Below, one piece after another: positions 1,231 through 52,615 of a stretch of 64,000 nt of DNA (its first letter is position 1; every line of letters begins with the position of its first letter). Made by a program: the position numbers and the translations under genes. Location: positions 62,001 through 126,000 of the IMG/VR virus record IMGVR_UViG_3300023049_000005, one strand, 5' to 3'. Below the pieces are notes generated by a model. That model saw only the letters and a program-made list of their open reading frames with translations, ran no database searches and was not told where the DNA came from.

Positions 1231-1647
1231 ATGAAATTCATAAAAAAGATCAACGAATATTATAATAGTAGTGAACATTACTCACATAGTGATGAATATG
1301 GCTCAATAGAAGGCATAGTACATTATGATGAAGAAAAGGTGAGAAATAGATTTAGTAAAATGAGAGTTGATCCAAATGATTATATAGATGAGTTATTTTA
1401 CCCTGTTGCTTTTTTAAATAATATCAATATTAATGAAGAACATAGAAACAAAGGAGTTGGTGGTGCTATGTACTTTGATTTCGAATCTTTTTGTGAATTC
1501 AATGGGATAGAAAATATTGTATTAGAAGCCGATTTATTAGAAGCACAACAGGAAGGATTCGACCTGACTAAATGGTATAAGAAATTAGGTTTCGAAACAA
1601 TAGGGGAAACTAGCGACAATCCTATTATGGTCAAGTATTTAAGTTAA
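1231..1647 (+). CDS. GNAT-family acetyltransferase with capsid-targeting-like N-terminus
   Basis: RNKGVGG acetyl-CoA motif, WYKKLGF; N-terminus MKFIKKINEY. Confidence 0.8.
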   Translation: MKFIKKINEYYNSSEHYSHSDEYGSIEGIVHYDEEKVRNRFSKMRVDPNDYIDELFYPVAFLNNININEEHRNKGVGGAMYFDFESFCEFNGIENIVLEADLLEAQQEGFDLTKWYKKLGFETIGETSDNPIMVKYLS

Positions 1648-2098
1648 GGAACATCTTATTCAATTCTTTTTTATAATCAGAATATCGAATTACTATTGAA
1701 AACTTGAATGTCGCAGGATTTACATAATATATATCTCTTATAGAATATTTTGATAAATCTCTACGAAATATCATAAAATTCTCATAAGTTATCTTCTCTA
1801 AGCAGATAGAATTATATTTATACTGAAAATAATCAGTATGATCAAACTCAATATTATATATCTCTGAATAATTTTCTATACGGACAGTATACTTAAACTC
1901 AAATGTTATATCCTCAATATCCTCAAGATATTTCTCATCTAAATCGCTACTTTTTCTTGAGATAGTGCCATCTTTTTTATGTATAACTATGGTTTTCTTA
2001 GGTGCTTTGGTTTTAAATGCATCCTGATCCTTTATCCTTTTATCGATATCATCTTTAAAAGTAGACTGAAAACCTTAAACTATTTCTTTATTTAACAT
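1631..2098 (-). pseudogene. unannotated 155-codon frame with an in-frame TAA at codon 8
   Basis: MLNKEIV*GFQSTFKDD...NLNT*; TAA at 2075-2077; TATATTTG promoter 4 nt upstream of the ATG. Confidence 0.55.
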
Positions 2099-2102
2099 GG
2101 TG

Positions 2103-2130
2103 CAAATATAATAAAAGTTTCTTATATTTG
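2103..2130. promoter_or_regulatory. divergent Bacteroidota-type -7 promoters (TAnnTTTG)
   Basis: TATATTTG on + at 2123-2130 and on - at 2103-2110, each 4 nt from an ATG. Confidence 0.7.
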
Positions 2131-2134
2131 TCAA

Positions 2135-2440
2135 ATGGAATTAGATTTTGATAAACCTATATTTGTGTACTATACATCTGATATAAATGTTGGTATAGAT
2201 GCGTGTAAAAAAATGGCAGATGCAGGAATGCAAGTTATACTTGTTCAATTATCTAGTAATTCTTATACCGATGGGTTAGATTGTGTGTACGGTGGGAAGT
2301 ATCATAATAGAGAAAGGGATATACATAAAATAGAACAAGCCATTCTTTTGGGTAAAGATATGGATATTACTAAAAAACTAAAGGAATTGAAAAAGGTTTT
2401 AAATAGGAATATGTTGATCGAAAATATTTTAGAAGAATAA
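2135..2440 (+). CDS. hypothetical protein, C-terminal RxxxIxxIL motif family
   Basis: ends RNMLIENILEE. Confidence 0.7.
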   Translation: MELDFDKPIFVYYTSDINVGIDACKKMADAGMQVILVQLSSNSYTDGLDCVYGGKYHNRERDIHKIEQAILLGKDMDITKKLKELKKVLNRNMLIENILEE

Positions 2441-2442
2441 TT

Positions 2443-2973
2443 ATGGAATATTTACAATACATAGGAAATATTATACTTGGGATAACCATAGCTACGATTT
2501 ATGTTATGTGTATATATATAAGAAAACTCAAAGTAGATAAAAGGGAATTAAAAAAATCAGTGAACATAGATATGGATGAGTATGAGGGATTGATTATTAA
2601 GTATGAAAAGTTAAAAGAAGACTATTCTGATCTCATTAAAGAGAGAGATAAACTAAAAGTTTATATCGGAGTAGTGAACGAAAAAGAATTCGGAATATTA
2701 AGTCACACATTGGTTAGAACCCACGAAGACGAAACAGAAAAAAAGGTTCATTTCGATTTTGAATTTAAAGTAGTAAAACGAGGACAGGACAAAGTTAAAA
2801 TTGAAATTACTGATTATAAATCAAGCTCTGAGGATAAAAGGGGGTCTTTATTTAAAAGGTGTCAGAGTATAGTTAATGGTTGGTATGATATAAATGATCC
2901 TGAAATAACATGGATAGAACCCGATAAAACAACACAAAGAGATTTTAGAATTGATAATATTTTATCAGAATAA
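2443..2973 (+). CDS. membrane-anchored coiled-coil protein, C-terminal motif family
   Basis: N-terminal TM helix; ends RDFRIDNILSE. Confidence 0.7.
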   Translation: MEYLQYIGNIILGITIATIYVMCIYIRKLKVDKRELKKSVNIDMDEYEGLIIKYEKLKEDYSDLIKERDKLKVYIGVVNEKEFGILSHTLVRTHEDETEKKVHFDFEFKVVKRGQDKVKIEITDYKSSSEDKRGSLFKRCQSIVNGWYDINDPEITWIEPDKTTQRDFRIDNILSE

Positions 2974-11853: not shown

Positions 11854-12978
11854 TCAAATAATTATTATACCGTCTCTATTAGGCGAAACGCTTAAGATTT
11901 TTATTCTCTGATGGAGATTATCTTGTATATAATTAATATATTGTCTAAAGTTAGGATCTTCTAAATCTGCTTTAACCCATGATTTGAAATCATAATATTT
12001 ACCACCACAATAAATTTTAAGTGGGGTTATATTTTCTAGTACATCAGATTTAGTCATAATTAAATCAGTTACTCCATTTAATTCTATACTCTCTTTTAAT
12101 TCATCTAAGTTTAACCAACCACATCTTCTTGGTCTGCCTGTTGTAGCACCAAACTCCCCACCTGCCTTCTGTATTCTTTCGCCAAGTTGATTTTTTAATT
12201 CAGTTTTCATATCACCATTACCAACTCGTGTTAAATATGATTTAAACACACCATATACTTTACCAACACTCTGAGGTGGCATTGCCAACCCTACACATGC
12301 ACCTGAACTTACTGTATTTGATGAAGTAACATATGGATAAGATCCATGATCAATATCTAACATAGTACCTTGTGCGCCCTCTGCTAGTATTTCACCTTCT
12401 TGGTTTCTTAACCAATTAGACTTAACGATATTTAATGTTTTAAGAAATTCCATACCTACTCTAAAATGTTCGAACTCAAGGAATTCATCTTGGTCTTTAC
12501 CCATTAAATCAACAGGTTCTATATTTAGATCGTTTCCAATAAAATCCACAACTCTATAACCTTCTCGGTATATTTTATCTCGATAACAAGGTCCGATCCC
12601 CTTTGGGGTACTACCTATGGTTGACACATTCTCTTTATCTTCCATAAAATGGAAAGGAGTCACTACGTGTGCGTTTTCTGAAATGAAAATTCTCTCTCTT
12701 GCGTTGGGTATATGTTCTTCAACTTCTTTTATTTCTTGCATCAATTGAAATGGGTCGATAACCATACCATTACCCAAAAAATTCTTTGTGTGTTCATGTA
12801 CTATACCACTTGGTATTAAGTGTAAAACTATTTTTATTCCATTATGATATATCGTATGTCCTGCGTTTGCACCGCCCTGATATCTAGCAACAATATCATA
12901 TTTTTTAGACAACATATCTGTTATCTTTCCTTTTCCTTCGTCTCCAAATTGAAGCCCTACTAATACGTCCATAAACAA
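11854..12978 (-). CDS. purA: adenylosuccinate synthetase
   Basis: GLQFGDEGKGK, GGANAGHT, EGAQG, GATTGRPRRCGW. Confidence 0.97.
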   Translation of the reverse strand: MFMDVLVGLQFGDEGKGKITDMLSKKYDIVARYQGGANAGHTIYHNGIKIVLHLIPSGIVHEHTKNFLGNGMVIDPFQLMQEIKEVEEHIPNARERIFISENAHVVTPFHFMEDKENVSTIGSTPKGIGPCYRDKIYREGYRVVDFIGNDLNIEPVDLMGKDQDEFLEFEHFRVGMEFLKTLNIVKSNWLRNQEGEILAEGAQGTMLDIDHGSYPYVTSSNTVSSGACVGLAMPPQSVGKVYGVFKSYLTRVGNGDMKTELKNQLGERIQKAGGEFGATTGRPRRCGWLNLDELKESIELNGVTDLIMTKSDVLENITPLKIYCGGKYYDFKSWVKADLEDPNFRQYINYIQDNLHQRIKILSVSPNRDGIIII

Positions 12979-13051
12979 TGATTATTTTATTATTCTATTA
13001 CTTTAGGGCATATATGTTTAAATAAAACTCTCTTATTTTAATATATAATAT

Positions 13052-13726
13052 ATGATTAAGAACTTTAAACAATTTATGATAGAAGCAACTTCATATCATA
13101 AATTAAATGATGATGATGAATATAATATTACGAAGACTATAAGAGATGATGGACATAATTATCAATATTGTGATGGTATATTATACGAACTTTCGGGGAA
13201 TGATACGAAGGTTAGTGTAGATGAAGTAGAACAAACAGAAGAAAATATGGTTTATTCAGATCAAATCAAAAGGTATATACAATATTTTAACGAAGGTGGT
13301 ATAACACAAACTTTCCCTGTTCAATCAAGTCCACTAGGCGACTGTACTAATTTAGAAGCTATGTTAGAGTATTTAGATGAACCTGATAATTTTGATATGG
13401 CTTGGGATCTTTTATCTAAATATCACAGGAAGTTATTTGATATGGATAAATTTGATATCGTAAGTGATCCTGATTCATTTGGGTTTAATGATGAAATGAA
13501 GCTATCACAAATAACTAATATAAAAGATTTAGACGATGCTTATAATGAAGATATAATGGAAGATGAAGACAGAGAAGGTGACTATGATGAAGAATTGTAC
13601 TTAGGGTTTAGTACTATATTAGAATATTGGAAAGAAAACAAAGAGTATACACTTACTGATTTTAATCATAGGTTCGCTGCTTTAGTAGAGATGGGTAGAA
13701 AATATATACTAGTAGAAGAGGTATAA
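13052..13726 (+). CDS. acidic protein with possible ParB/Srx-like motif and CTS-like N-terminus
   Basis: DFNHRFAAL resembles the ParB DGxHR box; MIKNFKQFMIE. Confidence 0.5.
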   Translation: MIKNFKQFMIEATSYHKLNDDDEYNITKTIRDDGHNYQYCDGILYELSGNDTKVSVDEVEQTEENMVYSDQIKRYIQYFNEGGITQTFPVQSSPLGDCTNLEAMLEYLDEPDNFDMAWDLLSKYHRKLFDMDKFDIVSDPDSFGFNDEMKLSQITNIKDLDDAYNEDIMEDEDREGDYDEELYLGFSTILEYWKENKEYTLTDFNHRFAALVEMGRKYILVEEV

Positions 13727-14997: not shown

Positions 14998-15621
14998 ATG
15001 ACAATATATGATTTACTAAAAGAATACGGATATGATGCAAATGACTTAAAAGCGAGATTTAAGAATAAGCAAATTGAATTGAATGGCGAAGTAGTGGATA
15101 AAAATGAAAAGATTGGTTTTGTAAAAGAAGTTTTTAGTCAAGGATTTTTTATGGAAAAGCTATATGAATTACCATTTTATCCTGATTTCTCAGATCAATT
15201 AATTTTTATCGGTATTGAAAATTTAATACATGGAGAAAGTAATATCAAAAATGAGATGACTGAATTCTTAAAAGATTATAATATGTTAAAAGTATCTAAA
15301 ACTAAAGCTATTTTCTTTAGTACTTTTGATGAAAAACCTGAAGGTGATACAATAAAAATTCAATTCCATGTTGACACTAAAGGTAAGTATGAGCAAGAGT
15401 ATGAAATACCTGAGGAAAAGGATGAATCAGAAGTTATCGATAAGCTAAAAGCTGATATCGATAAAGTAGAAAAACAATTATCAAACCCAGGTTTTGTTAA
15501 CAACGCACCTAAGTTTAAAGTAGATGCTGCTAAGAACAGATTAGAAACTTTAAAGAAAAAGTTAGCTGATATGGGCGTAAATGAATCTAAAGGTATTAAG
15601 AGATTTAAAGACTTTAACTAA
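14998..15621 (+). CDS. S4-like domain fused to a ValRS C-terminal coiled-coil arm
   Basis: KQLSNPGFVNNAPKFKV matches the ValRS C-terminal arm; N-terminus resembles a TyrRS S4 domain. Confidence 0.65.
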   Translation: MTIYDLLKEYGYDANDLKARFKNKQIELNGEVVDKNEKIGFVKEVFSQGFFMEKLYELPFYPDFSDQLIFIGIENLIHGESNIKNEMTEFLKDYNMLKVSKTKAIFFSTFDEKPEGDTIKIQFHVDTKGKYEQEYEIPEEKDESEVIDKLKADIDKVEKQLSNPGFVNNAPKFKVDAAKNRLETLKKKLADMGVNESKGIKRFKDFN

Positions 15622-15917: not shown

Positions 15918-16376
15918 ATGACAGAAAATCAATTAAAAAATATCTGTAATTTTTCATTCATTTTTTTATCCTTAAATATTTATAAAGAGAGTGATATTTA
16001 TATTTTAGGAAAGTGGAAAGCTATAATTGATGATGGGGATAGAATTATTGTTGATGATAAAAATAATCCTATTATATACGAAGAAGATATCGTTCCCCAT
16101 TATATGTTTGGATCAGTAGTTTTAGATTCGAAATTTATTTCTATTTTCTCTTTATTGTCTGATATAAAAGAGCTATATAGAGATGTCAAATTTACTAGAA
16201 GACCATTTACATTAGATAACTTATTAGAAATTTATAGAAAATATATTGATATAGAGCTTGTCAATAACCATTATACTGATTTTGTTATTCATGCGAATCT
16301 ATTACAGTCTAGAAATGAGTGGTTAGAATTTCCTATTAATAGTAGAACATATACCTTAGAATTGTTTACTGATTGA
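15918..16376 (+). CDS. hypothetical protein (start revised to 15918)
   Basis: TACTTTTG 4 nt before the ATG at 15918. Confidence 0.55.
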   Translation: MTENQLKNICNFSFIFLSLNIYKESDIYILGKWKAIIDDGDRIIVDDKNNPIIYEEDIVPHYMFGSVVLDSKFISIFSLLSDIKELYRDVKFTRRPFTLDNLLEIYRKYIDIELVNNHYTDFVIHANLLQSRNEWLEFPINSRTYTLELFTD

Positions 16377-16725
16377 GAACTTTATTTAAGTGAGATAACC
16401 CGTAATATATCTCGGTTACTCTTACTTTTATAACAGCTTGCCTACCTTGGTTATTGTAATTAGCGTTCTTTTTCTTGATAAGTGCAGTTAACCATATGTA
16501 ATCACCACGACTAATATCTTTAGGTACAGACATATCAAAAGTAACTGCGGACTCATCTATTTCACTTTCTTCTAGGTTTTCTTTCTCACTAGTAGATGGA
16601 TCTTCATCTAATACATCAATGATGTGATCGATTTCCCATTCACTAGGATCAAACTTTTCTCCATCTGACTCTTCTTCTGATAAAGAGAGGTCAAAGTCTT
16701 TGAATTTTTTAATATTATCTTTCAT
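16366..16725 (-). CDS. acidic protein with CTS-like N-terminus
   Basis: MKDNIKKFKDF; TATATATA 4 nt upstream. Confidence 0.6.
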   Translation of the reverse strand: MKDNIKKFKDFDLSLSEEESDGEKFDPSEWEIDHIIDVLDEDPSTSEKENLEESEIDESAVTFDMSVPKDISRGDYIWLTALIKKKNANYNNQGRQAVIKVRVTEIYYGLSHLNKVLNQ

Positions 16726-19456: not shown

Positions 19457-20227
19457 TTGAAAATAATTAAAGAATTTTGGGAGTTTTCTAAAAACCTACA
19501 CAACCACAACGGTTACGTAAAGAGATCACATGAGATGTTAGTTGATGTAATTGACAAGTTTGTCCCCGAAGAAGGGAAGTGGTTCGAAGATAAAAACAAG
19601 AATGCTATCTTCATTAAAAAAGTAGAAGATGGTAAATATTATGGTCACAATAGAGATGGTCAGGATATTGAAGGAGACGTTCAAGATATCAGAAGTGAAT
19701 TAACTAATGAATTATACATAGGGAATAATTTTGTAGTAAGTAAAAAATTAGATAATAAAAAGCTACAATATGTGGGGGGTGGATCAGAAGCTATTGGAAT
19801 TTTTACCGATGGAGAATATGCTTATAAAATAATAAGACCTGATTTAGTTCCTGAAATAGATATTATTAAATCTAAATACGTGAATCTAGGTTGTCCATCC
19901 GTGATTAAAATACATGATGCGTGGTTAGAGGAAACAAGAGATGGTTGGGAAAATGTTATAATCAAAATGGAAGAACTAGAGCCTTTACCTTTAGAAAAAG
20001 TAAAAGATCAAGATGAATTAGAATGGGTAAGAAAAAGACTTTGGGAGTCACAAGACAACCAAGAACCCATTAAAGATTTAATACACGAAGTAAAAGATCC
20101 TGAAACCAAAAAGATGATACAAGCAATTATTGATGCCCAAAAATGTTTAGGACATTTGGATATTGGTTTACATAATTTAATGTATGATCCGAAAAATGAT
20201 CAATATAAGCAAATAGATATCTTTTAA
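19457..20227 (+). CDS. protein-kinase-like enzyme with CTS-like N-terminus
   Basis: YVGGGSEA loop, AYKII, HLDIGLHNLM, IDIF. Confidence 0.75.
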   Translation: MKIIKEFWEFSKNLHNHNGYVKRSHEMLVDVIDKFVPEEGKWFEDKNKNAIFIKKVEDGKYYGHNRDGQDIEGDVQDIRSELTNELYIGNNFVVSKKLDNKKLQYVGGGSEAIGIFTDGEYAYKIIRPDLVPEIDIIKSKYVNLGCPSVIKIHDAWLEETRDGWENVIIKMEELEPLPLEKVKDQDELEWVRKRLWESQDNQEPIKDLIHEVKDPETKKMIQAIIDAQKCLGHLDIGLHNLMYDPKNDQYKQIDIF

Positions 20228-26551: not shown

Positions 26552-26562
26552 ATATATACTGT

Positions 26563-33471: not shown

Positions 33472-35169
33472 ATGGCGAGCTATAATCCGAATAACAGTCC
33501 AAGTTGGAGTAATAATAACACAGGAAATCAGGGATTTTTTTCGAGAGCGTTAAGAAACATCAGCAGTTGGGGCATGTACTACAATGACATGGTTTCTAAA
33601 AACAAAGTAACTATTGGTATAAATGAAGATCCTAATCAGATGTCAGGTAATGGTGGGATGTATGATTTCTTTTCACAGAGAGCCATTGCTTCTATATTAA
33701 GTCAAAAATCAGTTGCGTACTTAGATAAGAGCGTTAATGATAAAATAAGAATACTTAGAGAATATAGTATAAAAGACGAAATAAAAGATTTCGTAACTAC
33801 TATATGTGATGAGGCTATTATTTATGATGATGAAAGAAGATTCTGTGAGCCTAAAAAACTAAAAGACGATTATCCACAAGAGGTAAAAGATAGATATTAT
33901 GAGATATTCGAAGAGGTGTATAACAACTTTAATTTCTCAAATGGAAAAAGAGCTTGGGATATATTCAGAAGATTCTTAATTGATGGATATGCTGCATATG
34001 AAATTGTATGGGATGATAAAGCACAGAATATAATTGGATATGAAGAAGTAGAACCTGTTACTCTAATGCCTGGCTATGAACCTGAATCGGGTACACATAT
34101 TTGGATACAGTTTCCCGAAGACCCAACATTAAGAAGAGTGATATTAGATAGCCAAATCATATACCTTTCTTATAAATCTCATAACGAATATTCGGAGATG
34201 TCATACGTTGAGGGATTAATTAGACCATATAACCAACTTAAAATAATTGAACAAAGTAAGATCATATTTAATATGGCTAATGCTACAATTTATCAAAAGT
34301 ATGTAATACCTGTTAAAGACCTACCTAGACAAAGAGCAGAAGAAAGTGTTGGTAAGATGATTGCTAACTATTCAGAAGAAGTGAGTTGGGATGATACTAT
34401 GGGTGTTCCTGAGATTAACGGAAGTAAGCATATACCTTATAATAAACAATTATGGTTTCCTGAGGGAGAAAGTGGTACGCCACAATTTGAATTAATATCA
34501 CCTGATGGTCATAACTTAAATGAAAACGATATGTTGACATGGTTTTATAATGCTTTAAAAAGAGCTAGTAATATCCCATTCTCAAGATTTGATAAAGATA
34601 ATGGTGGTGGAGATATTTATGATAACAGTTCTGGAATGACTAACGATGAAGTAAAATTTGGAAACTTTGTAGGAAGATTAAGAACATCTTTTAAAGAAGT
34701 TGTTATTAAACCAATGAAACTTCAGATGCTTAGAGAATTTCCTGAGTATAAAGAAGACGCTAAACTATTAAATAGTATTGATGTAGAGTTTAATTCTAAC
34801 GATCTATTCGAAGAATGGAAGCGAATTAACAACCTAAACAAACGTGTTGAAACTGTACAGAAATTAGCAGATGCTATTGAAATAGATGGAAGACCTTATT
34901 TCCATCCTGAGTATATAGTTGATAAATACTTAAAACTTACTGAAGAAGAAAAACAAGAAAACGAAGCATATTGGAAGAAGAAACCAATTAAAGGAGACGC
35001 AGGCGATGGATCAGGAGGTGGTGACAGCTTTGGTGGTGATGATGACTTTGGTGGTGGAGACTTCGGTGGCGATGACGATTTCGGTGGCGGTGAAGATCTA
35101 GGTGGAGAAGACCTAGGCGGTGGCGCAGATGAAGGCGGTGGAGAAGACGTTGGTGATTTCGAATTCTAA
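33472..35169 (+). CDS. portal protein (T4 gp20-like)
   Basis: I.DEAI, FRRFLIDG, PYNQLK.IE, LP..RAE, IP.SRF, DEVKF..FV.RLR; Gly/Asp-rich tail. Confidence 0.92.
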   Translation: MASYNPNNSPSWSNNNTGNQGFFSRALRNISSWGMYYNDMVSKNKVTIGINEDPNQMSGNGGMYDFFSQRAIASILSQKSVAYLDKSVNDKIRILREYSIKDEIKDFVTTICDEAIIYDDERRFCEPKKLKDDYPQEVKDRYYEIFEEVYNNFNFSNGKRAWDIFRRFLIDGYAAYEIVWDDKAQNIIGYEEVEPVTLMPGYEPESGTHIWIQFPEDPTLRRVILDSQIIYLSYKSHNEYSEMSYVEGLIRPYNQLKIIEQSKIIFNMANATIYQKYVIPVKDLPRQRAEESVGKMIANYSEEVSWDDTMGVPEINGSKHIPYNKQLWFPEGESGTPQFELISPDGHNLNENDMLTWFYNALKRASNIPFSRFDKDNGGGDIYDNSSGMTNDEVKFGNFVGRLRTSFKEVVIKPMKLQMLREFPEYKEDAKLLNSIDVEFNSNDLFEEWKRINNLNKRVETVQKLADAIEIDGRPYFHPEYIVDKYLKLTEEEKQENEAYWKKKPIKGDAGDGSGGGDSFGGDDDFGGGDFGGDDDFGGGEDLGGEDLGGGADEGGGEDVGDFEF

Positions 35170-35690: not shown

Positions 35691-37937
35691 ATGAAAAACG
35701 TATTAATCATTGAACATAATCCTACTTCATTAAAACCCATTAATGAATCAGCAGGAAAAGGTCAAGAAGATAAGTATACATTAGGAGGCGTATTTACAGA
35801 ATTTGACAAAAAGAATAGAAACGATAGGGTCTATACTTGGAGTAAGTTCGAACCTGCATTAAACGAATTAAATGAAAGAATCAGCACAATGGGTGTATAC
35901 GGTGAGTATGATCATCCCGATACTTTTGATACTTCATTAAAGAATGCATCACACATGGTTGAAACGGCTTCTTATGACGAAAAAAACAATTGTGTTACAG
36001 GAAAAATCAGATTACTTAATACTCAGTGGGGTAAAGAAGCAAAAGCATTGGTTGAAGATAATTCACCTTTATTCGTTTCTTCGAGAGCTGCAGGTATTAC
36101 AGAAGGTAATGGTGAAGTAACACTTAAAAAATTATTCACATATGATATTGTGGCAGATCCAGGATTTTCCTCTGCTAGAATGCAATCATTGAATGAATCT
36201 ATGGGCTATTCATCAAATTCCAACTTTCAAATATATGAAATGGATGATGAAACAAAAATTAATCAATTATTTGAAATGAACAAAAATGATATGGTAACAA
36301 AACAGCAAATGGTAGATTACTCTGAGTATTTAGTAGAAAACATCAAAGAGGTGAAAGCTAAAATCAACGAATCTATCAAAACAGGTCAAATTCAACCTAA
36401 AAAATTAAATGAATTAACACAGTATTACGAAAGAATGCTTGAAGAACAAAATAAGATGACTAAGTACTTAGATTACTTAGCTGAAAATTTACAAGTTGTA
36501 GTAAAAGAAAACATAGAATTAAAAGAAAGTAATTCTAAGTTAGAAAAAACTACTAACAACCTTATTAAGCATAATGATTATTTAGCTGAAAACTTAGAGA
36601 AGTCTATTGAATTCTCTGATTATATTGCTGAGGAATTAGATAAGTCTGTAGAATACAGTGAGTATATCGCTGAGGAATTAGATAAGTCTATCCAATATGG
36701 TGAGTATATCGCTGAGGAATTAGATAAGTCTATCCAATATGGTGAATACATTGCTGAAAACTTAAACAAATCTATTGAATTCTCTGATTATTTAGCTGAG
36801 AATTTAGATAACTCAATCGTATATTCTGAATATTTAGCTGAAAACATTGATACTAATATCAAGTACTCTGAATACATTGCTGAGAATTTAGATAGCGGTT
36901 TAGCATACACTGATTATGTTGCTGAACAATTAGATAAGTCTATTGAATACAGCAAAATGATTACAGAAAAATTAAACGAATCATCTAGTAAATTATTTGA
37001 AAGCGTTGAGGGCGAAGAAATGGATGGATTTCCATCACCTGATATCGTAGGTCTTTCTGAACTAGAAATGGATATGGAAGAAGATGAAGATGAGGATGAA
37101 GATAATTTGGATATCAACGTTGATGTTGATGTTGAAATTGAAGGATCTGAGGATGACGTAAACTGCAGAGTAGTTTGTGATGATGACGAAGATGTAAATA
37201 TAGATGATACTCCCGAATTAGAAGAAGGTGAAACAGAAGAAATTATTTCTGATGAGCTTGATGAAGAAGAAGAGGAAATGGAAGAAAAGGAAGAATTAGA
37301 AGAAGCAATTTCTGAAGAAGTTTCACAAGAAGAAGCACACGACGAAGATAAAGACGAGTGTAAAGACTGTGAAGAAGAAAAAGAAGAAGAAGAAGAAGAA
37401 GATTTAATGATGGAAAATAATCTATCAAAATCTATCGACCAATTAATATTAGAAGCTAAAAAACGAGAAGCTTCTAAGACAAACGAACCTAATTTCTTGT
37501 CGTTTTTAAATAAAGATCAGTTAGATTCATTCTACGCTTTAGAGAACGATGATAGAGAATTAGTTATTGCCCATATAAACGAGAAGGGTAATTATTATTC
37601 TACAAGTGATGTACTAACTCTTATGAACGAAGCATTAGCTACGAAAGAGAAGAGTTTAGAGGAACGTTTAGTCGATGAAATGCCTGAGGAAGTTAAGGAC
37701 AAATGGGAAAAGATTACAGAATCTGCAAAGAACTCAATATTGAGTCAAGCTAGATTACATCCTACTACTAATTGGAATGAAGCGACTATGGAGCATTTTT
37801 GGTTAACTCGTAAGTTCCCTGCGATCAGAGAGTCAAACCGTGAATTGATCAACAAAGAAGATAGATTAATCCTAGAGGATAGTTTATCAGATGATGCGAT
37901 GAATTCAATTATGGAGAAATTTAATTCAATTAAATAA
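35691..37937 (+). CDS. prohead protease (gp21-like) fused to a scaffold/core domain
   Basis: NRNDRVY, GEYDHP, VSSRAAG, TYDIVADPGF; then 14-aa repeats and an acidic region. Confidence 0.88.
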   Translation: MKNVLIIEHNPTSLKPINESAGKGQEDKYTLGGVFTEFDKKNRNDRVYTWSKFEPALNELNERISTMGVYGEYDHPDTFDTSLKNASHMVETASYDEKNNCVTGKIRLLNTQWGKEAKALVEDNSPLFVSSRAAGITEGNGEVTLKKLFTYDIVADPGFSSARMQSLNESMGYSSNSNFQIYEMDDETKINQLFEMNKNDMVTKQQMVDYSEYLVENIKEVKAKINESIKTGQIQPKKLNELTQYYERMLEEQNKMTKYLDYLAENLQVVVKENIELKESNSKLEKTTNNLIKHNDYLAENLEKSIEFSDYIAEELDKSVEYSEYIAEELDKSIQYGEYIAEELDKSIQYGEYIAENLNKSIEFSDYLAENLDNSIVYSEYLAENIDTNIKYSEYIAENLDSGLAYTDYVAEQLDKSIEYSKMITEKLNESSSKLFESVEGEEMDGFPSPDIVGLSELEMDMEEDEDEDEDNLDINVDVDVEIEGSEDDVNCRVVCDDDEDVNIDDTPELEEGETEEIISDELDEEEEEMEEKEELEEAISEEVSQEEAHDEDKDECKDCEEEKEEEEEEDLMMENNLSKSIDQLILEAKKREASKTNEPNFLSFLNKDQLDSFYALENDDRELVIAHINEKGNYYSTSDVLTLMNEALATKEKSLEERLVDEMPEEVKDKWEKITESAKNSILSQARLHPTTNWNEATMEHFWLTRKFPAIRESNRELINKEDRLILEDSLSDDAMNSIMEKFNSIK
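36578..36952 (+). repeat. 42-bp (14-aa) tandem repeats EYIAEELDKSI.Y.
   Basis: about nine units, including a near-exact 42-bp duplication at ~36660-36745. Confidence 0.85.
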
Positions 37938-38032: not shown

Positions 38033-39745
38033 ATGATAAACTTAGACAAAACAGTAAAAAAATGGACTCCAATTCTAGAGAATATGGGAGTTGAGGGATC
38101 TGATCGTTTAGATTGGATGTCAGAGTACGCAGAGTATCATTCATTGAATGAAAATGCTTATGCAAACTTAGGTAATTTTAATGGCATGGGCGGTGTAGCT
38201 AACCCAACGGTAGCTGCTAACCCAGGTAATGCATTAGGAGTTACAGATTTCAGCAGAGGATACAATGCTGATGGAAATTCAGGCTCAGGTGACTACGGTC
38301 AGCAATTATTGCCTGTTGCGATGAAAATTGCTGCACAAACAATTGGTTTAGACCTAGTAAGCGTAAAGCCTACACCTGGTCCAAAAATTGATTTAATGTA
38401 CATCGATTTCGCATACGATGATAACACAAACGAAACAAATGAAAGACCTCAGGTTTTTGCTATTGATTTCGGAGCTAATGCAGGTGCATTGGAAACTTTC
38501 CTTAATGCAGCTTCAGCAGAAGCAGGTGCTATCCAAAGAGTAGGTGGTTTAACTGAGAGAGTATATCTTTCATTAAATGACGCTGCGGCTAACGCACAAA
38601 CAGGTTATGATCCAGGTGTTGCACCTGTTGGATCAAAACAATCATGGGTTGAATTCTTAGGATACTCTCGTATCGATAGAAAGCCTATGTTCAGAATTTT
38701 CCGTCAGGCTAACGTAGCAACAGCTACTACAGGTTCTGCATGGGGATTTGTACAAGCTGATAACACTTTTACAACTGATGAGGTATTAACTACTGTATTC
38801 GGTGGTGGATTTGGTGACACAGCAGGTGGCGCAACTTCTGCAACAGGTTCTAGCACAAGCTTAGAATTAGTGTCTGCATTAGAAGATCACTTACCTGCAT
38901 TTGCAGCAAACTTTGCTTCTGACAAATATCCTCAAACAAGAGAACAAGAAGAAACTAATTACCCAGGAATTATTGCTCCTAGAGTACAATCTAAGACAAT
39001 CCAAGCGGGGACATTAGAAATTTCTACTGCTCTTAAGAGAACTGAGATAGAAGATATCAAAGCAAACTTAGGTATCGATATCGTTCAAAAAATGGAGTCA
39101 ATCCTTGTGAACGAATTATCACAAACTATCTCTAAGCAAATAGTTGAAAAATTATTTGAAATGGGTGACTTAAACCGTCAGTCTGCACCTGGTTACACAA
39201 CTGCAACTGCTGCTACAACAGTATTTGATTTAGACGTTGATGCATACCTTGGATCATCTGCTTCGCCAGGTGGTGAAACTTCTCACGCTGTACAAAGAAG
39301 ATTAGTGACTAAAATCCTTAATTCTTCTAACTACTTAGCAACAGAAGGTCGTGTAGGTCCTGCTCAGTTCGTAGTTACTAACGGACGTTTAGCTGCTGCT
39401 TTAGCTGACATCGCAGGTTATACAATTAACCCTGTGAAATCTAAAGTAAATGGTTCAGGTCAACTGTATCCAATGGGTACAATCGGAGACGTTCAAATTT
39501 ACGTTGATCCTTACATGTTATATAATGATAACAGAATGTTAGTAGGACGTAAGAACAATCCTGACCAACCAGGTATCGTATTCGTACCATACTTAATGGC
39601 TCAGTCAATCAGCTTATTATCTGAAGCTACATTCGCACCAAGAATGTTGTTAAGATCTAGATATGCGATTGCAGAGTTAGGATTTTATCCACAAAAACAA
39701 TATATGACAGTTAAAGTTGTAGATACTAATAATATCTTAGCGTAA
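38033..39745 (+). CDS. major capsid protein (T4 gp23-like)
   Basis: KWTPILE, IAAQTIG.DLV.V.P, L.NE..Q.I, VYVDPY-like motif, PYLM, SRYA. Confidence 0.93.
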   Translation: MINLDKTVKKWTPILENMGVEGSDRLDWMSEYAEYHSLNENAYANLGNFNGMGGVANPTVAANPGNALGVTDFSRGYNADGNSGSGDYGQQLLPVAMKIAAQTIGLDLVSVKPTPGPKIDLMYIDFAYDDNTNETNERPQVFAIDFGANAGALETFLNAASAEAGAIQRVGGLTERVYLSLNDAAANAQTGYDPGVAPVGSKQSWVEFLGYSRIDRKPMFRIFRQANVATATTGSAWGFVQADNTFTTDEVLTTVFGGGFGDTAGGATSATGSSTSLELVSALEDHLPAFAANFASDKYPQTREQEETNYPGIIAPRVQSKTIQAGTLEISTALKRTEIEDIKANLGIDIVQKMESILVNELSQTISKQIVEKLFEMGDLNRQSAPGYTTATAATTVFDLDVDAYLGSSASPGGETSHAVQRRLVTKILNSSNYLATEGRVGPAQFVVTNGRLAAALADIAGYTINPVKSKVNGSGQLYPMGTIGDVQIYVDPYMLYNDNRMLVGRKNNPDQPGIVFVPYLMAQSISLLSEATFAPRMLLRSRYAIAELGFYPQKQYMTVKVVDTNNILA

Positions 39746-39830: not shown

Positions 39831-41453
39831 ATGGAACAAAAGTTACTTGAAATATTTGAAAGTCCTCATAGGATGAGGGAAACGTATGTTAAAAAACATC
39901 ACCCAAGTCTATATGATAGTATTATATCATATGTGGATTTTGACATTTCTTTCAAAGAAAAGCTTTGGTATTACTATAATAAACTAGAAGAAAAAATTAC
40001 ATGTAAGTGTGGTAAGGAAACTACGTTCAATAAGAATTTTAAAGACGGTTATAAAAAATATTGCTCTGCTAAATGCGCACAGACAGCCGAATCTACTAAA
40101 GAAAAAAGAAAGAAAACTACTTTACATAAATATGGTGTTGATAATGTAGCTAAAAGTCAGAAAATTAAAGACAAGACCGAAGAAACCAATATCGAAAGGT
40201 ATGGTCATAGATCTACGTTTCAAAATAAAGAAGTTCAGAGCAAATGGAAGGAAAATATTAAAAACAAATATGGCGTTGATCATATCTTCCAATCAGAGGA
40301 AGTAAAAGGAAAGATACAAGATACTATGAAGGAAAGGTATGGTGGACATTATACCAAAACCGATCATTATACAGATAAGCTTGGTGAAATTGGATTCAAG
40401 GAACTAATAAGGAAAAAGAAGTTAGATAAACACAAAGATTTTTTTAAAACACATGGTTATGAGTTTATAGAAATTAAAGATTATAGGAAATTCACCATAA
40501 AAAAGGATGATGATATATTCGAAATATATTGGGAAACTTTTATAAATAGGCTAGAAAACGGATATGAAATATCTACTAATATAAACCCATTATATTATAC
40601 AGGTCAAAGTGAAAAGGAAAAGGAACTCATATCATGGATTAGGACATTGGGTGTAGAAATCGATGAATCTAATAGAAAAATACTAAATGGTAAAGAAATA
40701 GATATATTTCTACCTGAATATAAATTAGGAATAGAATTCAATGGTTTATATTGGCATAGTGAAATGAATAAAGAAAAGAAACATCATATAAACAAAACAA
40801 AACAGTTAAATGAATTAGGAATTAGTTTGGTACACGTATGGGAGGATGATTGGGATCATAAAAAAAATATAATACAATCTATTATTCTTAATAAGTTAAA
40901 TAAAATATCTAATAAGATATATGCTAGAAAGTGTATTATAAAAGAAGTAAATAGTAAGGAAACTAATTCCTTTTTAGATAAAAACCATATACAAGGTAAG
41001 TCAAAGGCTAATATTAAATTAGGTCTATATTATAGAGATGAATTAGTTAGCCTAATGACGTTTGGTTATCGTAATATAAACGGAACTAAGCAATATGAAC
41101 TGATTAGGTTTTGTAATAAAATAAATAATATTGTCGTTGGGTCAGCTTCTAAATTATTTAAATATTTTATTAATAATTATAATTATGATAACATCTTATC
41201 ATACTCTGATATAAGTATGTTTGATGGCAAATTATATGAAATGTTAGGATTCGAAAACATGGGGGAAACTTCTCTAAACTATTGGTGGGTTGTTGATAAA
41301 AAGAGGTATCATCGGTTTACATATAATAAGAAAAAGTTGATCAAAGAAGGACATGACCCAAACTTGACAGAAAAGGAAATTATGTATTCTCTAGGTAATT
41401 ATAGAATTTGGGGATGTGGTCAAATTAGGTGGGTATATAAAAAACGATATTAA
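39831..41453 (+). mobile_element. free-standing Hef-like homing endonuclease gene
   Basis: Zn-ribbon, KYGV repeats, EIDIFLP...IEFNGLYWH..HVWEDDW nuclease, C-terminal GNAT-like fold. Confidence 0.75.
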
Positions 41454-41496: not shown

Positions 41497-41742
41497 ATGG
41501 AAAAAATAATTAAATCCTTTGCTACCTTCGCAAAATCTATTAAAGAAAATGTAGAAGAAGAGATGTTATCAACATGGACACTTACTGTATATGATGAAGA
41601 TGATAACATTAGACATCAAGAAGATATTGATTCTGATGACGAACTCAAAGCTGAAACAACTGCTAGAAAAATGGTAGATAATATGGATGACTACTGTGAC
41701 GGATGGGATTGGACTTTAATGCCTAAAGAATTCTTTGCTTAG
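41497..41742 (+). CDS. small acidic protein with CTS-like N-terminus
   Basis: MEKIIKSFATFAKSIKEN. Confidence 0.6.
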   Translation: MEKIIKSFATFAKSIKENVEEEMLSTWTLTVYDEDDNIRHQEDIDSDDELKAETTARKMVDNMDDYCDGWDWTLMPKEFFA

Positions 41743-45222: not shown

Positions 45223-45806
45223 ATGGTATTGAATTATAAACTTTTTGAGACTAAACAAGAAGCCGAATCTTTTTTAAATAATAAAGACATCGATTTAAAG
45301 GATGAAAAGTATATCGAACTAAAAAAGATATGCGAAAAAACACCCGCCCTTTTGGGAGTATGTACTAAGCTACTATTCTCAAAGAAAATGGCTATCGATG
45401 AAATCAAAGATATTTTACAGAAACTAACTAAAATGAGTAACCAACTGAAAAGAGATAATTTATCTATTCAGAATATACTTGTTGATGCCCTTAAAACAAA
45501 AGGAAATAGTTCTGAGTATATAGAGGATATTATTAATACGGTTAAAACCAAAACCGATGTATATAAGTTTATCAATTCTTTACAACACAAAGAAGTTAGA
45601 AACGAATTAAAGAACACCGAAGAATATTATAACGATGTAGAAGCAGGTATAATTTCACTAAACCATATCATGATATCATAGAACTTGAATCAGGAATCAG
45701 AAGTAGATCTAAAATAAAAGAGATTTTAAACAATTATGTAGACACCCAAATACTGAGTTTAGATAATATGATAAGAAAAGTGAAAATTTTTTCTAACCTT
45801 AAGTAA
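45223..45806 (+). pseudogene. frameshifted, truncated paralog of the 20243..22936 protein
   Basis: N-terminal similarity (E..Q.A.S.L...D....Y..L..I; LG..TK..F....DE.KD.L..L); continues in another frame from ~45648 to TAA at 45806. Confidence 0.55.
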
Positions 45807-47422: not shown

Positions 47423-48724
47423 TTAAACAATGTCTAACATTGAGATAGAAAGGGGTTTACCATTTTTTAAATCTCTTTCTATTTTAGACATATTAGCTTC
47501 CCATTTATTGAACATAATATCTAAGTTAGATAACTTACGTAGACGGTTTTCGATATCTATGATCTCCTTTTCTTTCTCGCTGAGTTCCTTCTGATTCTCA
47601 GTAAGGTCGCTTTCGCTTTTAAGTGCGTCTAATACTTCTTGTTTCTGTTCTAAGGACTTTTCTAATATTAGCTTTTCTCTTAATTTAGTTAGTAATGTGA
47701 TATATTGTTTTAGAAAGATATTTTCTTCAACAGTTCTATATACTGAAACACTATCTATTTCTTCCTCAACGTCTTCAAATGTATCTTTTAAGATATTCTT
47801 CTTCTGATCATAATCTTTAATTTGATCACGATACATCTTTATTAATTGATCCTCTTTATCTAAGAAGTTTTTATCATTTAACATAATGTCTTTATAATCC
47901 ATATATTCATTCATCTTTAAGATGTATTTAGTAGTATTAGGTAAAAGTATTTTCTGCATAGTTTTTATAATTCTTTGATCAAACACATTAGAATAATCAA
48001 CATCAAACCCTTTATAGACTTCCATAGAAGTAGCGAATCCATTCTTATCATACCAAAGTTTTATTCTAATAGTATTTAGTTCACCGTTCAAAGGAGTAAA
48101 ACAATTAACCTTAATAACGAAAGATCCATATTCTGTATTGATCTCATAAAAGAATAATTTAGTATTTCTATCTTCAAAGATATTCTCAGGGTCAGTTACA
48201 ATGTTTAAATTATAATTAATATTATTCTTATTTAATTCCGCTTCTATAAAGTTCTTCACATAAAGAATGAATTCAGTATTACTTTTCTTTTCTTCTTCTG
48301 TGAATTCTTCATTTAGTTTAATAAAAAGTTCGTTTTGTTTACTTTGGGTATAAGATATAATAAATTCATTAATATCATTTTTGATAGTTTCGTCTGTATC
48401 GGCTATGTTATAAGAATCTATATGGAATGACCCATAATGCTGTGGTTTATCTTCTATACCTTTTAGATCATCTGATTCAACACTTATCATATAATCAAAA
48501 CTAGTAGAATCAAAACTAGATCTTTTATATAATTGCATTTTAAATTTGTACATGTTACCAAATTCCATAGTTAATACGGGCTTTAAATGGCTAATATCTT
48601 CTAGATCTTCTTCTATGTCAATATCACCCAAAGTAAAATTCAAAGATGTTATACCACCAATGATAATCCCTTTAATTATTTCTATATTCTCAATAGTTTC
48701 AGATAGAATTTTTTTTGATCTCAT
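47423..48724 (-). CDS. hypothetical protein with coiled-coil C-terminus
   Basis: long ORF; C-terminal part resembles the neighbouring 48699..49202 protein (ENIFL/ENPFL). Confidence 0.6.
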   Translation of the reverse strand: MRSKKILSETIENIEIIKGIIIGGITSLNFTLGDIDIEEDLEDISHLKPVLTMEFGNMYKFKMQLYKRSSFDSTSFDYMISVESDDLKGIEDKPQHYGSFHIDSYNIADTDETIKNDINEFIISYTQSKQNELFIKLNEEFTEEEKKSNTEFILYVKNFIEAELNKNNINYNLNIVTDPENIFEDRNTKLFFYEINTEYGSFVIKVNCFTPLNGELNTIRIKLWYDKNGFATSMEVYKGFDVDYSNVFDQRIIKTMQKILLPNTTKYILKMNEYMDYKDIMLNDKNFLDKEDQLIKMYRDQIKDYDQKKNILKDTFEDVEEEIDSVSVYRTVEENIFLKQYITLLTKLREKLILEKSLEQKQEVLDALKSESDLTENQKELSEKEKEIIDIENRLRKLSNLDIMFNKWEANMSKIERDLKNGKPLSISMLDIV

Positions 48725-49202
48725 TTAGTTCTCTTTTTTTCTCTCTTATGAACTCTTCTAATTGCTCCTGTTCATCTTTATATTGTTCTTCTAAGTCTTT
48801 GATATCTTGCTCAAACTCTTTAGTCTTTTCTTCTTTCTCTGACATTTGTTCTTTAAGCCTCTGTGTTTGACTTTCTCTGTCCTCTTGGTCAGAAAGACTA
48901 CTAACACTATTTAAATCACTTCTAAGCTTACTTATAGTATCTCTCATGTCTGTTATAGCTAATTCCTTTTTCTTCATCCTAGCCTCCAAATTTAAGATCT
49001 GACCCATTCTAGATAAGAAAGGATTCTCTTCTACTATATCTTGATACGCTTTTGTGATATCTTTATCAGTATCAATATTATCTATAATAAGATTTTTTAG
49101 ATTGCCCTTTTTAGATTCGAATTCTCTTAGTTGAAATTCTAATTGTTCACCAGGACTTTGGGTGTTTTCTTCCTTAAATAATTTATAACTTTTAACTCTC
49201 AT
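48699..49202 (-). CDS. coiled-coil protein with CTS-like N-terminus
   Basis: MRVKSYKLFKEEN; AATATATA 4 nt upstream. Confidence 0.6.
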   Translation of the reverse strand: MRVKSYKLFKEENTQSPGEQLEFQLREFESKKGNLKNLIIDNIDTDKDITKAYQDIVEENPFLSRMGQILNLEARMKKKELAITDMRDTISKLRSDLNSVSSLSDQEDRESQTQRLKEQMSEKEEKTKEFEQDIKDLEEQYKDEQEQLEEFIREKKRELNEIKKNSI

Positions 49203-50302: not shown

Positions 50303-50620
50303 TTATTTTTTATTTCGGTTATCTATACCTGAGATCCAATTTCCTTTGAAATCCCCATCCTCAAAAATGCCGTTTAGCCACTTTCCATAGAACGTACCCA
50401 TTAACCAAATACCATACTTCCAACTACCGTGTAAATAATTACCCGATTTCCAAATTATAGTATCCCTAATAAGTTCTATTTCTGCGTCTTCAAACTCAGA
50501 ATCTACTAACCAAAAAAATTTATGATCCTTTAAAATAGAATTGATATCATTATCATTCTCTATTTGTTCTCCATTAAATTCAAAACTTTTATATCTCATT
50601 GAATTAATTAATTTATACAA
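50303..50620 (-). CDS. WxxG-repeat protein
   Basis: WKSG..WKYG.W..G.F.G.W.NG.F..G.F.G.W.SG. Confidence 0.6.
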   Translation of the reverse strand: MYKLINSMRYKSFEFNGEQIENDNDINSILKDHKFFWLVDSEFEDAEIELIRDTIIWKSGNYLHGSWKYGIWLMGTFYGKWLNGIFEDGDFKGNWISGIDNRNKK

Positions 50621-50727
50621 TATATATAAATTTAGGAAAACTGATTTATTCGAAATTGGGAAAATAATTGAAAAAAAAAAGCAACGACTGTAATAGCCAC
50701 TGCTTTAATTATTGAGGTAGTAATATT

Positions 50728-51027
50728 TTAATTAAGTTGTTCTACACACAAATCATAAGCTTTCTGTATGTCTTGATTAAGTACAGCTTCTTTTAATTCG
50801 TCTGAAAGATCCATCTCTTTTAGTACAGGCATCAACCAATCCCACGATTTATCGTATTTCATAGTTCAAGTGGCGTGATATCTACTATGGTCGGGCCATC
50901 TTTTTTTATTAGACAGACCATAATCCATCAAATAATGATCTAACTCTTTGTTTTCATTTAAATATGTAGTCAATAGGCTTCCACCCATAAACATACATAG
51001 CTTCTTATTTTTATCTTCTCTATTCAT
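50728..51027 (-). pseudogene. unannotated 99-codon frame with an in-frame TGA
   Basis: MNREDKNKKLCMFMG...YHAT*TMKYDKSWDWLMPV...; TGA at 50866-68. Confidence 0.55.
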
Positions 51028-51254
51028 TGTTTTTAGTTTTATTTACCAATGTATTTTACTATAAAAGTAGGGTAATACTTCTACCATATTATAATCCATA
51101 AATCCGAATAATACCACGTATATAATCGTGTAAATAAGTACTATTATCATACCTACTATACCCCCGATTTCTTCTTTGCACTCAGCAGGGAGTGAACAAA
51201 TTATTATTATTATTCCTACTATATACATTATCAGATCTAATACGTGCATGTTTT

Positions 51255-51719
51255 TTAGTTTTGGGGTTGTAGATATTTAAATACTTCTTTCATACCTTTT
51301 TCAATAGCTTTTTCTCTTTTTTTAATTGGGTTATCAGAAGTTTCTTTCTCATATACACACCAAACATATTCAACTCCTCCGTTATATCCATTTCTAAGAG
51401 GGGCAACATAAAAGTGTATATTATATTTCTCTATTAACCAATCTTGAACATCATGTATTCTAGGCGCAGAACACATATACCAATGTTCACTAGAATTATC
51501 TAGTGTTTTATCATTATTAATGAAAGATTGTGATTCTCTTGATAGTTCATTCATTTCCCAACCAAAAGATCCTTCTTTTTTACCCGTTTCAGGATCTACA
51601 CTTTCAGTTAAAGAAATCACATAATGATGACTAGATAATCTATTATATCCCACTTCTTTTAATTTCTTTGAAATATCAAAAGGGAGAATATCATTATTTA
51701 TTTTATCGAATATATTCAT
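51255..51719 (-). CDS. hypothetical phage protein
   Basis: SKKLKEVGY...SAP....VQDWL.EKYNI pattern. Confidence 0.6.
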   Translation of the reverse strand: MNIFDKINNDILPFDISKKLKEVGYNRLSSHHYVISLTESVDPETGKKEGSFGWEMNELSRESQSFINNDKTLDNSSEHWYMCSAPRIHDVQDWLIEKYNIHFYVAPLRNGYNGGVEYVWCVYEKETSDNPIKKREKAIEKGMKEVFKYLQPQN

Positions 51720-51946
51720 TATTTTTCGAATTTAATAGTCACAGATTTAATATATTTATTATCTTCGAATGTTTTAACTACTTCTTTTGTAGCTTCTTTC
51801 ATTTCGAAAATATTTTTTTCTATTAAATCCTCAAAATTATCATTAGTGAAATTATTAGTACTCCATCGTTTCTGTTTTTAATATATTCCATCTTTAGTTG
51901 TCTTTAATATTACAACAAATATACGAATTATTTTAATATATAAGAT

Positions 51947-52615
51947 ATGTTATTTAAATATCAACAATTTTTAAAAGAGAATAATAGTCTTAATATTTGG
52001 TATCATGGTACACCCGATGGTAGAGGGATAGTCAAAGATGGATTCTCACAAAATACTAAAAGTGTGGAATATTTAAAAGATATTGAAGGTTATAAAGATA
52101 TTATGAACCAATTAGAACAAGCTAGAATAGATGGTAAAGATAAATACTTTGAGATATTAGATAAGATATCTGATTTCAAAGACAATTTCACTTTTAATAA
52201 ACCTATATTTTTAAGTAATAATTATAGAGTTGCTTCTACGTATGCTACTGAGAAAAGAGCATTTGATTACCAAGAATCTATACCGAAAGTATTTAAAATG
52301 GGTATAAAAAACGAAGGTAAGGTATTAACTATATATGCTCACAATAAACGATTTAGATTTATTGATTCTGATTTTATAAAAAAGGGGTTAATGGACGGTG
52401 GTATAAGTTCAGAAAAAGCTGAAGAAACTATAAGTAAATTCAATTTCTTTTCAAGAAAAGATGGGATATCGATAGATACTATTGGAGCTATTGCTACTTA
52501 TTTAGGATTTGATACAGTAGATGTAGTTGGTGTATTAGATAGTTACCACGGTGGTACTGTAAAATCTACGGTAAGAATGGTATTTGATTCGAAGAATATA
52601 GAGATATTAAACTAA
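51947..52615 (+). CDS. ADP-ribosyltransferase-like protein with CTS-like N-terminus
   Basis: WYHGT...IFLS....VA.TYA...GFD.V...VF pattern; MLFKYQQFLKEN. Confidence 0.6.
   Translation: MLFKYQQFLKENNSLNIWYHGTPDGRGIVKDGFSQNTKSVEYLKDIEGYKDIMNQLEQARIDGKDKYFEILDKISDFKDNFTFNKPIFLSNNYRVASTYATEKRAFDYQESIPKVFKMGIKNEGKVLTIYAHNKRFRFIDSDFIKKGLMDGGISSEKAEETISKFNFFSRKDGISIDTIGAIATYLGFDTVDVVGVLDSYHGGTVKSTVRMVFDSKNIEILN

Follow-up and report, generated by a model that had tools for sequence, protein, structure and literature searches.

A short terminal peptide resembling the T4 capsid-targeting propeptide on about three dozen genes of a lake jumbo phage

INTRODUCTION

Phage T4 marks internal proteins with a capsid-targeting sequence (CTS), in which residues 4 and 7 are the targeting determinants and residues 8 and 10 the processing determinants (PMC9026906, PMC3012670). 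In the phiKZ-like giant phages (phiKZ, 201phi2-1 and SPN3US) the cleavage motif is A/S/G-x-E, and most propeptides are ~80 to 127 residues long, with no common short tag (PMC5694885). ADP-ribosyltransferase (ART) domains have been described in polyvalent proteins that are regarded as injected with the DNA (PMC7824862). Here we analyze a window of 64,000 nucleotides, bases 62,001–126,000 of one 270,756-bp contig of 29.8% GC (IMG/VR record IMGVR_UViG_3300023049_000005), in which a sequence-only reading had pointed to a CTS-like peptide at the start of eleven open reading frames (ORFs) and at the end of a twelfth.

All twelve ORFs and their termini exist as that reading described them. We conclude that the leader is probably a capsid-targeting propeptide of the T4 kind, employed on a much larger scale. 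What would be new is the form that T4-type tagging takes here, with ~36 tagged genes in this genome instead of a handful. A literature search of incomplete coverage found no description of the tag in huge phages, which is weak evidence of novelty.

THE LEADER MOTIF

Genes (342 in all) were called on the whole contig, and a position profile was seeded by regular expression from the genome's own N-termini and then iterated. The profile threshold, 8.45, is the score reached by 0.2% of internal sequence blocks. Below, the prefix w marks window coordinates and the prefix g marks whole-genome coordinates. The leader consensus is M-K-x-[IL]-K-x-[FY]-x-x-F and then hydrophobic-x-Glu; the core of the motif is [ILV]-K-x-[FY]-x-x-F, and profile columns 3 and 6 are Phe, Tyr or Trp. 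Leaders are 8–17 residues long.

Above the threshold lie 29 of the 342 N-termini, where 0.7 were expected, so that the genome-wide count that had been suggested as a check goes far beyond the cases in the window. The N-terminal scores are bimodal, with a gap from 11.9 to 8.1. The weakest of the 29, g129269-131371, has a weak tape-measure match, and we count it as probably spurious. Of the eleven N-terminal cases proposed for the window, seven stand above the threshold, namely w13052, w16366 (−), w26563, w29388 (−), w41497, w48699 (−) and w51947, while the other four are borderline. Two of these, w20243 (6.6) and w19457 (5.9), are probably real, because 36 N-termini score at least 5.9 against 2.3 expected; w1231 (4.1) and w45223 (3.8) could equally well be real or spurious, because at a score of at least 3.8 the count is 44 against 7.6 expected. 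The former pair has independent support as well, w19457 from a homologue with the identical leader and w20243 from the Glu|Asn boundary common to its paralogues. By these counts the true tag-bearing genes probably number ~36, about one-tenth of the genes in the genome, and the tag set appears as a genome-wide and clade-wide one that is not peculiar to the window. Once the leaders had been stripped, the 37 candidate mature proteins gave a single BLAST pair; the tag is therefore portable between unrelated proteins.

The peptide also occurs away from the N-terminus. In w14998 (14998–15621, + strand, 207 aa) the motif does lie at the C-terminus, as had been proposed, behind V-N-E-S, with an eight-column score of 14.6 that no other position among 78,390 internal ones attains. 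Outside the window, another two proteins have a C-terminal motif: g245316-245759 and g30727-31470, the latter behind I-N-E-S, so that [IV]-N-E-S precedes the motif in two of the three. The first of them, a Gly/Ala/Ser-rich protein of 147 aa, bears the leader motif at each end. A complete internal leader copy is found at a domain junction in the fusion homologues P0155 (a Tpt1/KptA domain joined to a kinase-like domain) and P0180, and in g257164-258222, where an H-E-x-x-H motif lies upstream of the copy.

Relatives share the tag. Among 1,219 ORFs near the relatives' capsid genes, 59 score above the profile threshold. A 634-kb phage has 55 promoter-adjacent genes, of which 13 pass the profile and ~35 show the motif by eye; the clade reaches genomes above 600 kb. 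An IMG/VR scan with the promoter described below and M-K-x-I-K-x-F, written together as DNA, yielded 82 stretches with 59 distinct N-termini. The residue three after the Phe, which that pattern leaves free, is aromatic in 36 of the 59.

PUTATIVE CLEAVAGE BOUNDARY

The strongest comparative evidence for a CTS is the conserved Glu at the end of the leader. Of the 29 leaders, 25 have hydrophobic-x-Glu within their first 18 residues, a feature of 39% of other N-termini (p = 7e-7). Family alignments place the Glu at the edge of the conserved protein. All 108 homologues of the ART-like w51947 that have the core signature begin their conserved domain at W-[YF]-H-G, with leaders that differ by lineage, and in 87 of the 90 with a leader of at least 10 aa an [LIV]-x-E lies 1–10 residues before the core (29% in control windows); the [LIV] residue of these 87 sites is Leu in 62, Ile in 21 and Val in 4. 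Some long homologues in this family have no leader at all. In the w13052 family (43 homologues, aligned on a shared downstream block) the leader ranges from 8 to 20 aa, and nearly every member has a Glu two positions ahead of the conserved [AS]-T-S-Y with which the mature part starts. Of the four large paralogues of this phage, treated below, three have Glu|Asn at the boundary, with leaders 8 to 14 residues long in front of it.

Such a boundary shows only that something probably cuts there. The leading rival to capsid targeting accordingly keeps the cut at this Glu but gives it a different function: the leader would be a non-capsid signal, such as a degron or timing tag, a membrane or compartment signal, or an inhibitory propeptide that involves no packaging. 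We regard this as rather unlikely. The large size of the tagged set would suit it, as would the acidic character of the cargo, which T4 internal proteins do not share, and the destination of the proteins, the capsid included, rests on sequence inference. The leaders, however, lack the hydrophobic stretch of a signal peptide, and their determinants are spaced as in the experimentally tested T4 CTS. The promoters and the head genes, described in the next two sections, bear on this rival as well.

PROMOTER ELEMENT AND CODON USE

Of the 29 leader genes, 26 have the element A[AT]ATATA within 60 nt, compared with 110 of the 296 other genes (p = 3e-8); among the three leader genes without it, two lie 10–20 nt after another leader gene. 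It had been reported upstream of all twelve ORFs in the window, where we also find it, and the count just given extends its association with the motif to the whole genome. In 19 of the 29 leader genes the octamer AATATATA stands exactly 4 nt before the ATG, an arrangement found at 52 genes genome-wide (e.g. window 13040–13054, 26551–26565 and 51935–51949). It recurs at LR745206 and at L059:2360-2376, and in the 634-kb relative it occurs 55 times, against 5 for the reversed control. With the octamer exactly 4 nt before the ATG, transcripts of these genes probably begin at or next to the start codon and would thus be leaderless or near-leaderless. This octamer is also found ahead of the capsid, protease, portal and sheath genes, separated from them by a spacer of ~20–30 nt that is A-rich in most cases, and ahead of the terminase gene at 4 nt. 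A promoter element common to leader genes and head genes argues against a signal unrelated to the capsid.

So fixed a promoter in a genome of 30% GC raises the question of whether the shared N-terminus is merely a by-product of nucleotide constraints, whether from a leaderless late promoter, the initially transcribed region or the translation start in an AT-rich genome, the peptide itself being inert. We consider this highly improbable. The promoter does not lie directly at the ATG in 10 of the 29 leader genes, and of the 52 genes with the 4-nt arrangement about half lack the motif. Codon choice at the conserved residues is the genome average: the TTT:TTC ratio is 11:6 at one conserved Phe position and 19:6 at the other, compared with 64:36 genome-wide, and Lys codons are likewise average. 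The distance from Met to the motif varies from 1 to 5 residues, and the peptide has C-terminal and internal copies. A relative of 55% GC retains both the peptide and the octamer 4 nt before the ATG. Conversely, Tenacibaculum phage PTm1, which is T4-like, has 29% GC and encodes a protease-scaffold fusion, shows the motif in none of 63 genes over 50 kb (no score above 3.9). The promoter is absent there also, and without the motif PTm1 is usable as a negative control only. Taken together with the aromatic residue that recurs at the free position of the IMG/VR pattern, these comparisons indicate that selection acts on the amino acids of the leader.

HEAD GENES

The window contains a head module of T4 type. 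The portal (33472–35169, +) matches Pfam Portal_T4 at 3.4e-64. The prohead protease, of the S77 or gp21 type, is fused to a scaffold-like region (35691–37937, +) and was recognized by Peptidase_S77 (28.4 bits, cut-off 27) and by the PHROG head maturation protease family (1.9e-34). The major capsid protein (38033–39745, +) belongs to the Gp23 family (Pfam 4e-30).

I/L-N-E sites had been noted in the capsid and protease proteins, and they are present as P-I-N-E at protease residue 19 and as S-L-N-E at capsid residue 40, where a probable propeptide ends. The capsid motif, H-[ST]-[ILV]-N-E and then N, is kept in 34 of 34 capsid proteins of relatives, with variable sequence downstream, and this pattern is the one expected of a propeptide boundary. 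The S77 prohead enzyme is the sole Glu-specific protease identified in the genome. That the same kind of site is found in the capsid propeptide, at the protease N-terminus and in the scaffold repeats speaks, with the presence of this one protease, against a cut made for a purpose other than head assembly.

The scaffold-like region consists of ten 14-residue repeats of the form aromatic-x-x-aromatic-[LIV]-x-E, the residue before the Glu being Ala in nine, followed by a long acidic Glu/Asp tract. At the DNA level the repeats have a 42-nt period in 9 copies, and every relative has them, in 8–13 copies. In form they resemble both the second half of the leader and the T4 CTS.

This likeness could also be read in another way, with the leader marking structural parts of the head (core, inner-body or decoration proteins) that are cut and then degraded or retained, as most T4 scaffold is. 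The Gly/Ala-rich protein with the motif at both ends (g245316-245759) would fit, and so would the four large paralogues, which resemble the paralogous head-protein families of phiKZ-like phages (PMC5694885). We think a structural role for the tagged set improbable, since Nudix, kinase-like and ART-like folds among the tagged proteins have no obvious place in a head. Moreover, relatives of the ART-like domain are fused to ART-PolyVal, a family of the phage polyvalent proteins, which are regarded as injected with the DNA.

CARGO PROTEINS

The cargo had been called a set of host-modifying enzymes, a description that suits a minority of the tagged proteins. The Nudix member of that set is firm and the kinase-like and ART-like members are supported by their folds, whereas the GNAT assignment is weak and ~30 other leader proteins have no recognizable domain.

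The firm case is w29388 (29388–29831, −, 147 aa, score 16.3), which its family matches identify as a Nudix hydrolase behind a 13-residue leader: Pfam NUDIX matches from residue 19 with 43.5 bits (cut-off 21.1), and PHROG Nudix families match too. In the 634-kb relative the gene L090 has a post-leader sequence resembling this Nudix protein and a leader that ends in V-N-E.

The w19457 protein (19457–20227, +, 256 aa), with core I-K-E-F-W-E-F and the promoter ~30 nt upstream, is the only one of the borderline cases with a TTG start. That start is supported because reading from the TTG gives a textbook leader that is identical in a homologue of 61% identity; the leader is also kept internally in the Tpt1 fusion homologue. 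Pfam gave no match, yet a eukaryotic-like protein kinase fold is supported by a model of modest confidence (predicted local distance difference test, pLDDT, 70), whose top 26 Foldseek matches are all Ser/Thr kinase domains with E of 0.001 or better (best 1e-4). Its Atlas look-alikes are T7 kinase, Pkinase and Kinase-PolyVal at 0.94. Invariant in the family are G107, G109, K124, D235, N240 and D254, corresponding to a Gly-loop, a Lys, D-x4-N and a terminal D-I-F.

The leader of w51947 (51947–52615, +, 222 aa, score 17.0) occupies residues 1–11 and ends in L-K-E, with the core starting at W-Y-H-G-T. The model (pLDDT 91.7) supports an ART fold: 30 of the top 31 VIA-align matches belong to the ART superfamily, with Z of 5.7–8.2, led by AcrIF11 (Z 8.2) and followed by diphtheria toxin, PARP and exotoxin A at about Z 7. 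As these Z values are middling, the call rests on the consistency of the matches. The W-x-H-G signature is conserved in the family, with W18, H20 and G21 invariant and Y19 nearly so; no invariant Glu or catalytic acidic residue was identified in the homologues. Assignment to ART-PolyVal itself was rejected: this Pfam family does not match the w51947 domain, and its matches in long homologues lie beyond the part shared with w51947, in an extension at the C-terminal end. Neither w51947 nor w19457 yielded a useful match when solved structures were searched by sequence. Two of the cargo proteins have fused homologues, with ART-PolyVal and with Tpt1/KptA domains as the partners.

Weakest is w1231 (1231–1647, +, 138 aa), a possible GNAT acetyltransferase. 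It reaches 20.4 bits with Acetyltransf_7 (cut-off 27) and 18.7 with another GNAT family (cut-off 20.7), and 1.9e-4 with a PHROG acetyltransferase. Its variant leader, I-K-K-I-N-E-Y, recurs in near-identical form at the head of P0013, an ART-family homologue.

The remaining leader genes of the window encode proteins of no assigned function. The w13052 protein (13052–13726, +, 224 aa) has a score of 21.2, no known domain, and a leader of residues 1–11 that ends in M-I-E before A-T-S-Y; its promoter lies 4 nt before the ATG. One of its homologues, P0198, is filed at NCBI under an Ignavibacteria metagenome-assembled genome, which may be a mis-binned phage contig or a host clue. The 4-nt promoter is found also at w16366 (16366–16725, −, 119 aa, score 13.8), w26563 (26563–27039, +, 158 aa, score 20.3) and w48699 (48699–49202, −, 167 aa, score 16.6), none with a known domain, and at the borderline w45223 (45223–45681, +, 152 aa). 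Homologues of w16366 in the relatives L032 and L060 retain a leader-like start; w26563, whose leader ends in F-L-E-S, has no Pfam or PHROG match. The small w41497 protein (41497–41742, +, 81 aa, score 14.9) is encoded after the capsid gene and a homing endonuclease gene, with the promoter ~29 nt upstream.

The large paralogues are w20243-22936 (+, 897 aa), with a leader that ends in I-L-E before a conserved N-x-Q-Q-A-K, and, elsewhere in the genome, g216468-218273, g230115-232544 and g252561-256598; they are 601–1,345 aa long and have ~250 residues in common just after the leader. Outside the window, 19 of 20 leader proteins have no functional annotation (Pfam on all twenty, PHROGs on ten of them). 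In the leader-bearing g267108-267533, residues 8–36, directly behind the tag, match Pfam DUF6576 with 36.5 bits, above the cut-off.

SOURCE VIRUS AND NEIGHBORING GENES

In IMG/VR the contig is classed as a linear virus record, 89% complete. Its sequence is present in six lake-water DNA runs and in no RNA run, and it is known from lake metagenomes only. The closest capsid proteins are those of uncultured huge phages of 634–735 kb (48–58% identity), and next come Lak phages and PTm1 at ~29%. Given these neighbors and head and tail genes of T4 type, the source virus is, as judged from its genes, a distant T4-like jumbo myophage. The nearest cultured relatives infect Bacteroidota, which we take as a hint to the host and as nothing more.

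Other genes of the window include an adenylosuccinate synthetase (purA-like, window 11854–12978, −, Pfam 1.4e-119), an auxiliary gene of nucleotide metabolism. Two paralogous HNH homing endonuclease genes (phrog_3339) lie at window 39831–41453, directly after the capsid gene, and at 59923–61647, after the sheath gene; in relatives, genes similar to HNH homing endonucleases occupy varying sites around the capsid gene. The tail sheath (56007–59816) is unusually long at 1,269 aa, and the PHROG sheath families match its last 400 residues only. The large terminase (53281–55518) has 745 aa, with the PHROG family match spread over residues 134–674.

PROPOSED MECHANISM

The reading of the leader as a CTS passed every sequence-level test that we ran, with a T4-type head module, unrelated cargo, matching spacing, a Glu boundary and a shared promoter. 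Late in infection, ~36 unrelated proteins would be made with a short amphipathic leader of 8–17 residues, or in a few cases with a C-terminal peptide instead. During prohead assembly the leader would dock its protein on the scaffold core, which would be built from the protease-scaffold fusion with its 14-residue repeats of similar aromatic-x-x-aromatic-hydrophobic-x-Glu form. The gp21-type serine protease would then cut after the Glu and free the mature protein inside the head, from which it would exit with the DNA at the next infection.

Several observations weigh against this reading. The phage sequence occurs in lake-water DNA runs only, and packaging, cleavage and injection are inferred. 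The element is found also before a helicase gene and within 60 nt of 136 of the 325 genes counted, and for this reason we use 'late' for the leader genes as a statement of promoter association and not of measurement. A search of the genome with T4 gp55 found no homologue, which says nothing firm on the late factor, since the record is not complete (89%) and divergence may have put the protein out of reach. P3 of the putative cleavage site is often Phe, while T4 gp21 prefers Leu or Ile at that position and this phage's own scaffold repeats have Leu or Ile there. The mature cargo is acidic on average, unlike the basic T4 internal proteins. A complex prediction for the scaffold repeats (protease residues 236–440) with the first 40 residues of w13052 scored 0.00, which gives no verdict either way. 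Finally, when 30 T4 proteins are scored with the profile of this phage, IPII and IPIII come out first and second and IPI fifth, but the T4 CTS scores 5.1, short of the 8.45 threshold. Because the T4 spacing matches and these proteins rank at the top but below the threshold, we file the peptide as CTS-like in its working only and not as a member of the same sequence family.

A more specific proposal, which we put forward tentatively and at somewhat less than an even chance, is that in this clade any gene can be made into head cargo by a portable cassette of three parts. It would combine the late promoter, placed 4 nt ahead of the ATG, with a leaderless start and a tag of ~12 residues; the tag would mimic the 14-residue scaffold repeat, co-assemble with it and be freed by the same cut. 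If so, about one-tenth of the proteome would be delivered as protein at infection, including kinase-, ART- and Nudix-type enzymes, and dozens of delivered proteins without a known role would become candidate counter-defense factors.

Huge uncultured phages encode hundreds of proteins without a known role, and sequence is silent on which of them act first. If the tag marks head cargo, it would serve as a sequence-only predictor of the injected proteome of this clade, made up of proteins that reach the cell before the phage's genes are expressed. It would also supply a shortlist of candidates for host takeover or anti-defense, ~36 here and ~35 or more (by eye, among promoter-adjacent genes) in the 634-kb relative. 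The likeness of the tag to the scaffold repeat would hint at how targeting of the T4 type operates, a mechanism still not understood in T4, and the tag might be used as a natural loading tag for engineered capsids. The fixed distance from promoter to ATG suggests that these phages, whose closest relatives in culture grow on Bacteroidota, make a class of late transcripts that are leaderless.

COMPARISON WITH KNOWN SYSTEMS

The T4 CTS is a propeptide of 10–19 residues at the N-terminus of otherwise unrelated proteins (IPI, IPII and IPIII; Mullaney and Black 1996; PMC9026906, PMC3012670), and the leader described here is alike in this respect. In both there is a Lys two residues before the first aromatic, the aromatics are three apart (4 and 7 in T4) and hydrophobic-x-Glu follows (8 and 10 in T4). 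Both genomes encode a gp21-type S77 protease, a Gp23 capsid and a gp20 portal. C-terminal processing has also been reported for T4 Alt and gp21; here the C-terminal copies are known from sequence. The differences lie in the number of tagged genes (~36 against a handful), in an extra [IL]-K before the first aromatic and in the frequent Phe at P3. Further, the cargo of this phage is acidic and has enzyme folds, its protease and scaffold form one chain in which the scaffold part has leader-like repeats, and most of its tagged genes are apparently leaderless.

The phiKZ-like phages are likewise giant myophages, with dozens of head-loaded proteins and a T4-related prohead protease that cuts after Glu (PMC5694885), to which the present phage compares by its genes only. 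Its tag, in contrast to their propeptides, is short, shared and terminal.

Polyvalent proteins of phages and conjugative elements, reportedly described by Iyer et al. in 2017, have ART, kinase and GNAT-type domains that are delivered with the DNA, and the cargo here has ART-like and kinase-like folds, a possible GNAT domain and homologues fused to ART-PolyVal and Tpt1/KptA. Those proteins are single giant multidomain chains, whereas here each domain has a separate gene with its own tag and promoter.

Encapsulin cargo-loading peptides resemble the tag in being short and terminal, at either terminus, on diverse cargo destined for an HK97-fold shell. They differ in that they bind the shell protein directly and are not removed, in a system with no protease, scaffold or DNA; the tag of this phage would instead act through a scaffold and be cut off by the prohead protease.

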